Below are positions 14,328-46,659 of a DNA stretch of 64,000 nucleotides, piece after piece (position 1 is the first letter of the stretch; each line of letters opens with the position of its first letter). This DNA is from Antechinus flavipes. Lineage: Eukaryota. The position numbers and the translations under genes are program-made. The stretch is from contig NC_067401.1 in the NCBI RefSeq assembly GCF_016432865.1, forward strand, positions 479,818,001 through 479,882,000. The letters are read 5' to 3'. The notes below the pieces were generated by a model. The model saw nothing but the letters and a program-made list of their open reading frames with translations. It searched no databases and was not told the DNA's origin.

Positions 14328-14533
14328 ATGGGGGCCCGAGGCCTCGCCATGGCCATCCTGCTGGGGCTGGCGGGGGCCGCCCTGGCCTCCAAGAACAGGT
14401 CGCGGATCTGCCAGCCGGCCCCGGCCTGGCAGGTGGACGGGGGCGTCTCCCCCATGGAGGAAGCCCTGGGCAACGTGACGGTGGTGGCCCTTCTCAAGGC
14501 CAGCTGACACTTCTGCCTCCTGCAGGCTGCCAG
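14328..14533 (+). CDS. SELENOP2: SELENOP2 coding exon 1 with in-frame UGA (Sec60) at 14505-14507
   Basis: Acceptor ctcccgcag|gg ATG; AAG GCC AGC TGA CAC TTC TGC; donor CCAG|gtgatg. Confidence 0.92.
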
Positions 14534-17504
14534 GTGATGGGCCGAGGGAGGGTCTCGCGGGGAGGGGGGACAGTGCCAGTCCTGGACTCGGGGGGCCGGA
14601 GGTCCCGGCTGGCCCTGGGCACGTCACGTCATCCTGTTTGCCTCAGTTTCCTCCTCTGCAAAACGGGCCGGAGGAGGAAATGGCCGGGGATCTGTTAGCA
14701 GAGCCAAGGGGCCCGGGAGGAAGAGGCAAAGGAGCCGAACTCCAGGCCCACCCGGGACTCCTCCCCGCGGGTGACATCCGGCCTCCTCATTCCGAGACCG
14801 CTCCCCATGTCACCAAATCTCATCGTAGGGAGGGAGCTCGGTGGGAGCAAGAGGGGATGCTCTCCATCGCAGAAACAGGGGGCTGCACCCTCCGAGGGCA
14901 GGGGGGTCACCACCCTCAGGGCGGCCCGTCCACTCAGGGACAGCTCTCAGTGGTTGGAAACCCTCCCGGGCCCCCAGGCTCAGTCAGCCAGCGCTCCCCC
15001 CTCCCCCCCCCCGGCAGCCTCTGCCTTCCCCACCCCAGACCGGCCCTCGGCCCACAGGAAGGCCCTGGGCACGGCGGGAACGGCGCCCCGACTCCGGAGT
15101 CTCCTGGCCCCTCCGAGCTGAGCCGCCCCCAGCCCCCCCCCCCGCCAGCCCCCGCACGCCCCTTTCTGCACTTGCCCCTGGCCCGTTCCCAGGCCCAAGC
15201 CAACAGTGGCTTTATTCCCTGAGAGGAGGGGGGAGGGACAAGAGTGGGCCGAGACAGCCGACCCAGAAATGGGCCCTCCCTGGAGAGGGAGCCCTCCCCC
15301 AGGCGGGGGCCCCTCTGCCTCCCCTCCCCACGGACTAGCAGCCCCTCAGCATCCCCGGGGTTTTGTCCGCCCTGACACACCTGGGCGGGAACAAGGTGCT
15401 GGTCCACTAGGACCACCAGAAATTCCTGGCTACTTCTACTATTCAAGACCATTTTACAGAGGAGGGAACTGAGGCTGGAGGGAGGAGGCTTTTAGCTCAA
15501 GGTCTCAAAGGTGAGCAAAGGCAGGGCTGGGAACAGCCCCCCCTCAGCCGCAGGCCCGGGACCCCGGCTCCCTTATCTCAAGGTCAAGGCCCCGTCGGCG
15601 GAGGCTCCGAGGGCCCGAGGGTGGGGGAAGGGGCCGCCCAAGGCCCCGCTAACGCGGCCCTTTCTCGCCCCCAGGATAGGCAGCCTGCAGGAGCGCCTGG
15701 CCCGCGCGGGCGCCGCCGGGGTCCGCTTCCTCATAGTCAACCACAAGTCGGCCGCGGCCCAGGCCCTGCACGGCGAGCTGGAGCTCCAGGCCCCCCGGGG
15801 CGTGCCCGTCTACAGCCAGCGGGGGCCCAGGCCCGACATCTGGGGGCTCCTCGGAGGGGCCAAGGACGACTTCCTGGTCTATGACAGGTGGGCCCGGGCC
15901 GGGCGCTGGGGAAGGGGGTGGGCAGCGCCGCCGTCCCGGAGTCCGGGCCCTGAGCTTCCCAAGGCCCGGGTAGCCCCCCGGGGCCGACCGCCACGCCGGC
16001 CCTCCCCCACTTTTCCTGACTTGGCAGAGCGTCCCGGACCCCTAGACTCTGCAGGCGTGAGAGTGGGCGGCGGGCACAGCTCCTGACCTGCTGGGTGGGC
16101 ACCTGCCCCCTCCATCCAATTCCTTGTATGACCAGGAAACTGAGGCCGGAGGCCAGGGAGCGGCAGAGGACCCGGGGCCACGGCAGAATCCGTACCCAAG
16201 CCCCGAGCCCACCCTGTCTGTCCCCCCAGGTGTGGCCGTCTGACCTTCCACATCCAGCTGCCCTTCAGCGCCCTGAGCTTCCCCTTCGTGGAGGCGGCCG
16301 TTCGCTTCAGTCACCAGAAGGATCACTGCGGGAACTGCTCTTTCTACCCCGCCCAGGTGAGACCGAGGGGCCGGGCTCGGGGGGTCTCGGGGGCCTTGGG
16401 GCCCAGCAAACGGCCTATTCCATGAGTGGGCAGTGGGCGAGGTCACGGGGGCGAGGTCACGGGGGCCAGGTCACGGGGGCGAGGTCACGGGGGCCAGGTC
16501 ACGGGGGCGAGGGCGCTGCTCTGCCCTTGTCTGGCCCTCGGGGGGTTCCTGGGTCCTGCGAGGTTGGAGGGAGGGAGAGCGGGGCTCCGAGCCCGGCCAC
16601 GCGGCTTTCAGAGAGGTCCAGGTCTCGCTCTGGGCGGGGCAGACTCGGGACCCCTCGCCACCTCCCTCCTGGAGACCCCACGCGAGCGCAGGCCTCCCCC
16701 TGGGCCTTGGGGGCTGTGAAGGCACAGATTTACGCACACGCTCCCAGGCAGGGCAGGAAAAGGTACCCGGTGCCAGTAAGGAAGCCTCCAGGCCCGGGGC
16801 TCTCAGAGCTGGTTTGGCCACTCTGCCCTGGCCCAGACCATCTACGCCAGCGGGGGAGCTCGTTCAGAGGCTCCGGGGCATCCGGGGCCGGCCTGGTGCA
16901 GAGAGGACTCAGTGGGGACCCCCGGTGGCCCCCCATGCCCGCCCTGGGCAGGGGCCGGGGAGGCTCCTTCCTCTGGGTCCCGGCAGAGGGCAGAGGCCAC
17001 GGCTCACCAAGGCCAGCCTCGCTCTGGCGCTGAGCAGCTCGCCAGGAAATTCTCTCTGGAAAGCCGGCATGGGGGTGAGCCCCTCCCTCCCCGGGCTGGG
17101 CCGAAGCTCCTGCGGATGGGAGGGGGCTCTGGAGTGGCCTGGGGGTCCAGCCCCCAGCCGCAGGCCCACTCCCCCCGGCCCCGGGGCCGCCTTTCAGGCC
17201 CCACAGACCCCCCCCCAGCTGGTGAGCGTGTGCCCAGCGGCCATCGGGGTGACATGTTTCTGTCCCGTTTCCTCTCCAGGTGAACGGCACGGACCAGGCC
17301 GAGTCGGCAGCCCAGTCCCCCAGCCTGGAAGGAGGGCAGGGGTCCCCGAGCAAGGGGCCCGGCCCCCACCGGCCGACTCTGCCGTCCGGCTCCCCTCCCC
17401 CGGCCCAGGCCCGTGGGCCCGACCGCAGCCCCGGCGAGCAGCCGCCTCCCAACCCCCCTCCCCACAGCCTGGAGCTGCTTCCCCACGAGCTGGCCGTCGC
17501 TTAA
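14328..17504 (+). CDS. SELENOP2: Selenoprotein P paralogue (SELENOP2/SelPb-like), single Sec, 256 aa, 4 coding exons
   Basis: Coding exons 14328-14533, 15675-15887, 16230-16356 and 17280-17504, all GT-AG with consistent phases (771 nt). Signal peptide MGARGLAMAILLGLAGAALAS; VTVVALLKAS-U-HFCLLQA; GAKDDFLVYDRCGRLTFHI; CGNCS. These are SELENOP N-terminal domain motifs. There is no His-rich or Sec-rich tail. SECIS and AATAAA lie downstream. Confidence 0.92.
14515..15696 (+). promoter_or_regulatory. Candidate Sec redefinition element (SRE) hairpin spanning the exon 1/2 junction
   Basis: CTCCTGCAGGCTGCC (14517-14531) is the exact reverse complement of GGCAGCCTGCAGGAG (15679-15693). The loop in the spliced mRNA is AG|GAUA. 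Confidence 0.65.
15675..15887 (+). CDS. SELENOP2: SELENOP2 coding exon 2 (213 nt)
   Basis: ccccag|G ATA GGC...GAC AG|gtgggc; encodes IGSLQERL...KDDFLVYDR. Confidence 0.92.
16230..16356 (+). CDS. SELENOP2: SELENOP2 coding exon 3 (127 nt)
   Basis: ccccag|G TGT GGC CGT...GCC CAG|gtgaga; encodes CGRLTFHIQLPF...CGNCSFYPAQ. Confidence 0.92.
16439..16510 (+). repeat. 14-bp tandem repeat (x5) carrying AGGTCA half-sites
   Basis: (g/c)aggtcacgggggc with AGGTCA at 16440, 16454, 16468, 16482 and 16496. Confidence 0.85.
17280..17504 (+). CDS. SELENOP2: SELENOP2 terminal coding exon (Pro-rich tail, TAA stop)
   Basis: cctctccag|GTG AAC GGC ACG...GTC GCT TAA; phase 0 matches the previous exon. Confidence 0.75.
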   Translation: MNGTDQAESAAQSPSLEGGQGSPSKGPGPHRPTLPSGSPPPAQARGPDRSPGEQPPPNPPPHSLELLPHELAVA

Positions 17505-17670: not shown

Positions 17671-17755
17671 GCCCTCCCTCCCTCCATTAATGACGCCCGC
17701 AGTGCAACCCCGAGAAGCGGCCACGGCGGGCTGACGCCACGTAGGGAGGAGGGAC
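17671..17755 (+). promoter_or_regulatory. SECIS element (type II) in the SELENOP2 3' UTR
   Basis: A-UGA-C at 17690-17694; helix II GCCCGC/GCGGGC, A.G, GUG/CAC; unpaired AA at 17706-17707, 12 nt after AUGA; mini-stem CCG/CGG with AGAAG loop; 3' UGAC at 17732-17735; helix I between C/U-rich 17671-17685 and GGGAGGAGGGA at about 17744-17754. Confidence 0.9.
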
Positions 17756-17837: not shown

Positions 17838-17843
17838 AATAAA
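17838..17843 (+). terminator. Polyadenylation signal of SELENOP2
   Basis: AATAAA about 85 nt after the SECIS. Confidence 0.7.
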
Positions 17844-45223: not shown

Positions 45224-46659
45224 GCAGGAGCACCATCAGACTTATTCTCTAGAGAAATTAAAGAAGAAACAGACCGATAGATATAAAACCATTTATATTG
45301 GCTCTTTTTGTGGTTGCCAAAACCTGGAAACTGAGGGGATGCCTATCATTTAGGGAACAGAGGAAAAAGTTATGGTATATGAACGTGATAGAATATGGTT
45401 TTGCCATGAGATAGTGAAGGTTTCAGAGAAGCCTGGAAGGACGCGGTAAATGGAGCCAGAGGGAAGTGAGCAGAAGCAGAGAATTGAGTTGCTAACAACA
45501 CTGTGAAGAAAAACAGTTTTGAAAGGCTTCAGCACTCTGGCCAGCCCAATTGCTGTCACAGCTCCAGAAGACTGACAGTGAAGCCCTGACCAAGTTCATG
45601 GATCCTAGGCAGAATTGGGGCAGATCCTGGAGAGCTCTGCACGGGCAGAGCGGGCGAGAGGGTGTTCGCCCCCAGGAGAGGGCGGACAAGATGGCCCAGG
45701 GCTCCCTCCTGGCCAGATGGAGAAGGAATGAGCAGGGATGGAGATGGCTTCTAGTTGCTAAGGAAACTTCAGCCTGGGGAGATGCAGGACCGGCATTTAG
45801 GGCCCTCTAGTGGGCAGTGGGGGGACTGGAGCATGTGGGGAGACCCGGGCTGGATATACGGGAGGGCCCACTTGGCTGGGGGATTGAACGTGTTGCCCCC
45901 TGGCGGAGAAATTGGTCAATTCCTGGTGCTGTTTGGCGCTTCTGTAGCCTTGCTTACACTAGGGCAGTGCCCCAGAGGGTCCCGGGACAGCCGCCGAGTG
46001 CCCACCCAGGGTGTCACACTAGGGGACTGCGGCTTGTGAGATGGGCTGTGCGAAGGGGGCTGCTCCGGAAGCCAGGGACAGGATGGGACGGAGGCCTAGA
46101 AGGTGCTGGCATCCTGTGCCCGGCGCGGAGTGGGGACTCGGTGAAGGCCGGAGGACAAGAAGGGAGAACCTGGGTGGGGGGAGAAAGCCACCTCTGGCTG
46201 CCCCTCTCCCTCCTCCTTCCCCCCTCCTCCCTTCCATCACTTCCACCTCCTCCTCCCGCTCCCCTTCACCTCCTCCTCTCCTCCGGGCCGGGCCGGCCTG
46301 AAACCCTGCCCCTTCCCAGGGGTTTCCTTTGGACCACCTGCAGGTCGGCGAGCGGGGCAGCTGCCCCGGAGGTAATGGGCTTCCCCTGACCGCAACTGGG
46401 GAGGGGCAGGCAGCGGGATGGGGACGCTGAGCCCTGCGGAAGTCGTGAGCTCCCCGGGCCAGCAGCTGCTTCCCCCGGGGAGAGCCGACTGCGGAGGACG
46501 GGTCTGCTCCCCTTGCTCCCTTGCTCCGGAGGCAGTGAGCTCGCTGTCCTGCAGGCTGCCTTCCCCCTGCCTCTATTTCTCCTCTTGCCTCCGAGCTCAG
46601 AGGATCCTTTGCTCGGCGCTCGTTTAGTTCTGCTTGGTCCTGGATCTTGGCTCCGCCCC

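Follow-up and report, generated by a model that had tools for sequence, protein, structure and literature searches.

A conserved hairpin assembled across an exon junction next to the selenocysteine codon of SELENOP2: a probable selenocysteine redefinition element

The 64,000-nucleotide (nt) stretch of the Antechinus flavipes genome analyzed here (NC_067401.1, positions 479,818,001 to 479,882,000 of the forward strand; hereafter, the window) contains, at 14328-17504, a gene that by its sequence is SELENOP2 (SelPb), the paralog of SELENOP that encodes a single selenocysteine (Sec), is lost in placental mammals, and carries cysteine (Cys) in frogs and sharks (bioRxiv 10.1101/2025.05.29.656587 / PMC13134290). 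Directly 3' of the Sec-encoding UGA, splicing brings together the two arms of a perfect 15-bp hairpin. We interpret this hairpin as a selenocysteine redefinition element (SRE) of the SELENOP2 mRNA, the paralogous counterpart of the SRE1 element of SELENOP, and put the probability of this interpretation at roughly two-thirds. The pairing register is conserved across the Sec-encoding SELENOP2 genes of jawed vertebrates and has decayed in the Cys-encoding forms of frogs.

A hairpin assembled from two exons

The gene model, which was derived from the window sequence and has GT-AG boundaries at every intron, comprises a coding sequence of 771 nt for 256 amino acids, with one in-frame TGA (codon 60, in a U-H-F-C motif; Table 1). 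The host gene had been taken for SELENOP2 in an earlier note on this DNA, and this identification is borne out by the 100% identity of exon 2 (15675-15887) to 'selenoprotein Pb-like [Antechinus flavipes]' (P0001) and by the PF04592 relatives: the product combines the SelP_N domain (PF04592) with a lone UxxC Sec and the host is a non-placental vertebrate, there is no Sec-rich tail, PF04592 matches named selenoprotein Pb come from marsupials, birds, reptiles, and fish, and the family has SelPb/SELENOP2 relatives in marsupials, birds, crocodilians, turtles, squamates, amphibians, and fishes. In the alignment, the Antechinus TGA coincides with TGA in 7 other Sec species and with TGC or TGT in two frogs.

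The arms, CTCCTGCAGGCTGCC and GGCAGCCTGCAGGAG, are 100% complementary and lie 1147 nt apart in the genome; both are in frame, with L L Q A A facing G S L Q E codon by codon. They are separated by intron 1, with the donor TGCCAG/gtgatg after 14533 and the acceptor cccccag/GATAGG before 15675 (slashes mark splice junctions), and only upon its removal does the mRNA contain the 15-bp stem capped by the 6-nt loop AG/GAUA. The spacer between the UGA and the stem, CACTTCTGC, is nearly invariant in sequence between species. The stem begins 9 nt after the UGA; pairing of G14515-C14516 with G15695-C15696, which leaves one C bulged, would shorten this distance to 7 nt. RNAfold assigns -33.3 kcal/mol to the 36-nt hairpin and reproduces the two-pair extension across the bulge, and when the whole mRNA is folded, all 15 pairs have probabilities of 0.69-1.0. 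The description in the earlier note, that is, a perfect 15-bp exon-exon hairpin 3' of the Sec UGA, a loop containing the splice junction, a spacing of 9 nt (7 if extended), and arms about 1.15 kb apart, agrees with the arms, the exon boundaries, and the fold of the spliced mRNA. The in-frame Sec UGA is thus followed directly by a short spacer and a stem-loop that is predicted to be stable in the mature mRNA, at the SRE-like distance that the same note had pointed out.

Table 1. Coordinates of the hairpin, the gene model, and associated features in the window
Feature	Position	Strand	Basis
Sec exon, coding part, ATG at 14328	14328-14533	+	gene model
Possible lower helix, 5' strand GGCCAGCT, includes the U of the UGA	14498-14505	+	RNAalifold consensus
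Sec-encoding TGA, codon 60, U-H-F-C redox motif	14505-14507	+	gene model, alignment
Spacer CACTTCTGC, 9 nt, UGA to stem; last two bases able to extend the stem	14508-14516	+	
Hairpin 5' arm CTCCTGCAGGCTGCC, codons L L Q A A, stops 2 nt short of the donor site	14517-14531	+	
5' part of loop, AG, last two exon bases; exon end 26 nt past UGA	14532-14533	+	
Phase-2 GT-AG intron, 1141 nt, between the hairpin arms	14534-15674	+	gene model
Second coding exon	15675-15887	+	gene model, identity to P0001
3' part of loop, GATA, first four bases of the exon	15675-15678	+	
Hairpin 3' arm GGCAGCCTGCAGGAG, codons G S L Q E, starts 4 nt past the acceptor	15679-15693	+	
Lower helix, 3' strand, codons R L A, overlaps the 2-bp upper-stem extension	15695-15702	+	
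Third coding exon	16230-16356	+	gene model
Last coding exon, TAA stop at 17502-17504	17280-17504	+	gene model
Candidate selenocysteine insertion sequence (SECIS): AUGA at 17690, apical AA, 3' UGAC	17672-17755	+	fold, conservation in Sarcophilus
AATAAA polyadenylation signal	17838-17843	+	sequence

Conservation of the pairing register among Sec-encoding orthologs

The orthologs compared were genomic sequences from the Tasmanian devil, Sarcophilus (L001), the alligator (L008), a bird (contig L010), and the frog Spea bombifrons, with Cys (L011), along with transcript contigs from fishes (L002, L009), a bird (L003-5), and a probable reptile (L006); L007 is a second frog Cys homolog. The taxon labels of the Logan contigs L002, L003-5, L006, and L009 were inferred from protein similarity. 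The L010 contig (JGI metagenome contig Ga0065711_1043343, 14.8 kb), which contains a complete bird-like SELENOP2 with introns, presumably represents host or environmental bird DNA in a metagenome sample. With the U of the UGA numbered 0, the Antechinus register pairs +12..+26 with +33..+47; the number of codons from the U or C to the motif L-[QR]-[ED]-[RK]-L is equal in all sequences, and the alignment is free of gaps.

The number of pairs out of 15 and the predicted stability both vary among the Sec forms: 15 in Antechinus (-33.3 kcal/mol), 14 in the Tasmanian devil (-28.6), 12 in the birds L003 (-20.1) and L010 (-19.1) and in the probable reptile L006 (-20.3), 11 in the alligator (-14.8) and in fish A (L002; -18.1), and 10 in fish B (L009; -14.0). 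Altogether, 81% of the cells are paired across the eight Sec forms in the Antechinus register, as opposed to 30-48% after shifting of the 3' partner by 1-3 nt. When the columns of the eight sequences were shuffled, the observed pairing was reached in 9 of 5000 cases and the observed covariation score in 4 of 5000.

Five pairs change on both sides (15/44, 16/43, 20/39, 23/36, and 24/35). Pair 15/44 goes from C-G to A-U, and pair 16/43 from U-A to C-G; in fish A, the marsupial CUG/CAG is replaced by ACG/CGU, which makes two compensatory pairs and changes the amino acids from L/Q to T/R. Pair 20/39 goes from G-C to A-U in the alligator through CAG>CAA together with CUG>UUG, both synonymous. The third-codon bases +17 (G), +26 (C), and +41 (G) are fixed in 8 of 8 Sec forms, and amino acids vary over fixed pairing bases (L, K, T, M, or Q in codon +15; A, N, R, or H in codon +24). 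Given only the four non-mammalian mRNAs, RNAalifold recovers the same register; because no marsupial sequence was involved, the circularity of testing a structure derived from Antechinus is removed. Conserved pairing with compensatory changes, as expected of an SRE, is therefore observed here in a small sample of 8 sequences, and the objection anticipated in the earlier note, a lack of conservation and covariation in orthologs, falls because the register is kept with compensatory changes.

In contrast, 15 perfect pairs are not a general feature of this gene, given that the Tasmanian devil has 14 and the other Sec species have 10-12. A single synonymous difference, GCC in the devil where Antechinus has GCT, is left uncompensated and yields a C.A mismatch. 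Non-dasyurid marsupials were judged from protein only; the wombat protein (H F C L K Q A A S I G N L Q E) is compatible with at most 12 of 15 pairs. Judging by these comparisons, the perfect 15-bp stem is the dasyurid extreme of an older, usually weaker stem.

Decay of the stem in Cys-encoding frog genes

Frog homologs, which encode Cys (TGC, TGT) instead of Sec, amount to a natural experiment. The core of the stem, otherwise invariant, is broken in these genes by synonymous choices, namely, GUC or GUA at +17 and, in Spea, CUC at +41. The two frog hairpins have predicted energies of -9.6 and -6.0 kcal/mol, which do not surpass those of synonymous redraws (P = 0.14 and 0.69, respectively), and the pair probability of the core is 0.04-0.05. 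In the Spea Cys gene, the intron (399 nt) is kept at the same position, whereas the core of the stem is gone; the stem therefore tracks the UGA rather than the intron.

The frog genes also bear on the quite improbable alternative that the structure acts in translation or in the fate of the mRNA rather than in recoding efficiency, for instance, by pausing ribosomes so that the thioredoxin-like domain can fold or be translocated, or by modulating decay of the mRNA after termination at the UGA. A stem of -33 kcal/mol would be strong enough to slow ribosomes, and although the next junction follows the UGA within 50 nt, two further junctions downstream could trigger nonsense-mediated decay (discussion in PMC5133445). 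However, the stem is lost in Cys forms that have the same protein domain and the same secretion route, which argues for a role tied to the UGA, and, according to PMC5727441, the paralogous SRE1 affects recoding in reporters without the native protein context.

Codon usage, chance, and the strength of the evidence

By chance alone, such a stem is rarely expected: shuffling of the window yields an expectation of 0.03 matches to the arm 15-mer, and a search of the 64 kb for exact 15-nt seeds that recur in inverted orientation within 2 kb yields just 9 cases, most of them transposon copies. A copy of arm 1 with one mismatch, GTCCTGCAGGCTGCC, lies at 46546-46560 near a CpG-rich stretch, in non-coding sequence; it was taken as a chance match. 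When codons are redrawn synonymously with the protein fixed, 15 of 15 pairs are obtained at P = 0.0002 under uniform codon usage and P = 0.0014 under the GC-rich usage of the gene. Nevertheless, the amino acids alone already predict 9.4 (uniform) to 11.1 (gene usage) of the 15 pairs, so that the perfection of the stem is unusual but comes on top of a strong built-in pairing tendency, and it is partly a consequence of GC-rich codon usage.

This tendency raises the possibility that the hairpin is a functionless by-product: a conserved protein helix behind the UxxC motif would require residues of the L, Q, A, G, and E type, the codons of which are by coincidence mutually complementary, with GC-rich usage in this dasyurid gene perfecting the pairing by chance. 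Apart from the outcome of the redraws, such an origin would fit with the presence of the palindrome CTGCAG (Leu-Gln) in both arms, with the restriction of the perfect stem to Antechinus, the mismatch in Sarcophilus remaining uncompensated, and with the lack of significance in several species once GC-rich usage is assumed (fish B and alligator do not significantly exceed synonymous shuffles). Yet, paired bases stay fixed while amino acids change, there are double-sided compensatory changes including the purely synonymous pair in the alligator, the register emerges without marsupial sequences, synonymous decay hits the exact core positions in the frog Cys forms, and a complete stem is rare even with the codon usage of the gene itself. 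We therefore consider a by-product unlikely.

Several observations weigh against the SRE interpretation, beginning with the amino acid-driven pairing and the two non-significant species mentioned above. The eight Sec sequences represent only about six lineages; the structure that was tested came from one of the eight, and the slid-register control is biased accordingly. Among the Sec forms, the strength of the stem spreads from -14 to -33 kcal/mol, and in one bird, the local minimum free energy structure differs, with a core pair probability of 0.06. The evidence from frogs reflects one Sec-to-Cys conversion, independent of that in sharks, seen in two lineages and, coming from a single event, is suggestive only. 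Finally, Rfam scans, at the gathering threshold and then with E up to 10 over 13-26 kb of the window, detected no SECIS (SECIS_1), and no other family was matched in the window either; among the orthologs, SECIS_1 gave only a sub-threshold match in one fish. A candidate SECIS was found by eye and by folding downstream of the stop codon (Table 1); its predicted fold has -37.5 kcal/mol (z = -2.6), and 86 of 91 bases are the same in Sarcophilus.

An ancestral intron and the possible role of splicing

The hairpin is split between two exons by an ancestral phase-2 intron located 26 nt past the UGA. This position is maintained in 5 of 5 genomic loci that were read (Antechinus and four others), with intron 1 lengths of 1141 nt in Antechinus, 945 in Sarcophilus, 119 in the alligator, 108 in a bird, and 399 in Spea, and is exactly the one published for SELENOP and SelPb, which have their intron positions in common and in which conservation of the junction located 26 nt 3' of UGA1 is described as high (Open Biology 2016, PMC5133445). 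Given that the intron is ancestral and shared, SRE1 of SELENOP very probably spans the same junction. The junction-spanning layout is thus an inherited trait of the whole SELENOP family and not a device peculiar to this gene.

The earlier note had proposed that Sec insertion could depend on splicing or that the arms could bridge the splice sites in the pre-mRNA. What speaks for bridging is an equilibrium fold: in a 1321-nt pre-mRNA segment, the long-range helix is retained with pair probabilities of 0.66-1.0, forbidding arm 1 costs 16 kcal/mol, and the prediction for Sarcophilus is alike. In this fold, the G-rich start of intron 1 (14534-14557) pairs with the pyrimidine tract of the same intron (15653-15677) and continues the exonic helix. 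Such pairing of intron ends was considered as a specific feature and rejected, given that the 5' ends of other introns pair as well (-43.7 and -48.2, compared to -46.2 kcal/mol; shuffle P = 0.07); because other introns cross-pair equally, the complementarity is a generic pairing of G-runs with pyrimidine tracts. Furthermore, the fold ignores co-transcriptional kinetics and bound proteins, and the helix would run into the 5' splice site and the polypyrimidine tract, so that it is likelier to hinder than to help splicing. Species with introns of 108-119 nt carry weak stems, and bridging therefore cannot be the conserved role.

Under licensing, Sec would be inserted only on correctly spliced mRNA, perhaps in concert with the exon junction complex (EJC). 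The strict maintenance of the intron 26 nt past the UGA in the five loci is in line with both ideas, bridging and licensing. The EJC would sit next to the UGA, and a role of EJC/eIF4A3 at this junction has been the subject of speculation (PMC5133445). However, retention of the intron truncates the protein anyway, so licensing would add little; SELENOP constructs without introns still recode UGA1 (PMC5133445); and the frog Cys genes, as shown by Spea, retain the intron after the loss of the stem core. Hence, we regard bridging and licensing alike as very unlikely. Equally slim are the chances of a more far-reaching version, in which the intron would have been kept since splicing builds the recoding signal, by joining the arms and depositing the EJC on the spacer beside the UGA, with the dasyurid duplex looping out the 1.1-kb intron of the pre-mRNA; if true, splicing would act as a license for decoding Sec throughout the SELENOP family.

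Other features of the locus and its annotation

Beneath the upper hairpin, the SELENOP2 consensus fold includes a possible lower helix of 8 bp (-7..0 with +49..+56). Its sequence is conserved from fish to marsupials, with a C.C mismatch in dasyurids. Because it shows no significant covariation in the ortholog alignment and persists in the frog Cys forms, we claim no function for this helix.

The Sec exon is mishandled across several public SELENOP2 models (P0001, P0003, P0006, P0008, and P0009). In the Antechinus model, it is skipped, and translation starts in a spurious exon within intron 1 (MAGDLLAEPRG...); in the Tasmanian devil model, splicing goes around the TGA; and in the models of the possum, opossum, and owl, intron sequence is translated where the end of the exon belongs. 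On the practical side, the Sec exon of SELENOP2 is skipped or mis-spliced in the public annotation of Antechinus, the Tasmanian devil, and several other species.

A transcript retaining intron 1 would read AGG UGA (14532-14537), that is, an instant stop provided by the donor GUGA, and the immediate stop upon retention is common to Antechinus, the Tasmanian devil, and one bird. Intron 3 contains a short tandem array at 16436-16512, with about five copies of a unit of the type GGTCACGGGGGCGA/GGTCACGGGGGCCA. In the brushtail possum (Trichosurus), the opposite strand carries a URO-D (PF01208) gene some 4 kb downstream of the SELENOP2 locus.

Proposed mechanism and implications

The geometry of the hairpin suggests how it might act as an SRE. 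When a codon occupies the A site of the ribosome, the next 9-12 nt or so lie inside the mRNA channel. Once the UGA has entered the A site, a stem that starts at +12 (+10 if extended) would, owing to its 9-nt spacer, have its base right at the entrance of this channel, a geometry shared with the SRE of SELENON and with stimulators of readthrough and frameshifting. The intact helix may then slow the ribosome or disfavor the action of the release factor, which would leave more time for the machinery consisting of the SECIS, SBP2, eEFSec, and Sec-tRNA and would favor insertion of Sec over termination.

If this interpretation holds, a proven recoding helper, SRE1, is extended to the older single-Sec paralog SELENOP2, and the element would be older than the duplication that gave rise to the two genes at the root of vertebrates. 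The stems of the orthologs (about -14 to -33 kcal/mol), together with the decayed stems of frogs, would form a natural series relating stability to Sec insertion. It takes splicing to create the element, and the junction at which this happens holds a position the conservation of which has already been found puzzling in the literature.

Comparison with known recoding elements

The SRE mechanism itself is known from SELENOP SRE1, and what appears to be new is its counterpart in SELENOP2: no SRE in SELENOP2 is described in PMC5727441, in PMC5133445, or in the other literature searched. SRE1 was defined by comparison of 131 vertebrate SELENOP mRNAs (Mariotti et al. 2017, Nucleic Acids Res; PMC5727441). 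As described there, it lies just downstream of the first SELENOP UGA and overlaps it, within 51 nt (the construct comprised codons 41-76); mutations in the lower stem reduce recoding by up to 50%, those in the upper stem by 20-30%, and compensatory mutations restore it. From its position and from this description, the pairing register of the SELENOP2 hairpin is probably homologous to that of SRE1. SRE1 has lower and upper stem parts, as does the consensus fold of SELENOP2, both genes have the same ancestral intron 26 nt past the UGA (PMC5133445), and the possible lower helix of SELENOP2, which takes in the U of the UGA, matches the published wording that SRE1 overlaps the UGA. Unlike SRE1, which is hosted by SELENOP, the element described here belongs to the single-Sec SELENOP2, a gene with one SECIS that is absent from placental mammals, and its perfect 15-bp stem in Antechinus is probably far more stable than a typical SRE1.

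A second relevant system is the SRE of SELENON, which was reportedly studied by Howard et al. in 2005 and 2007 and by Maiti et al. in 2009. This element has a spacer of about 6 nt and is contained within one exon. The stem of SELENOP2 shares with it the placement of a hairpin a few nt 3' of the Sec UGA but belongs to an unrelated gene with an unrelated sequence, has a spacer of 9 nt (7 if extended), and has its arms in two exons. According to PMC8704476, the SELENON (SEPN1) SRE is a hairpin a few nt 3' of the Sec UGA; it promotes the insertion of Sec and counteracts termination, with stem, loop, and spacer all being important. Stimulators of readthrough are mentioned there as well.

In stimulators of readthrough and of -1 frameshifting, a stable helix is located about 6-9 nt past the recoded codon, at the mRNA entrance of the ribosome. 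These signals differ from SREs, including the one proposed here for SELENOP2, in that they work with ordinary tRNAs and do not need the SECIS machinery.

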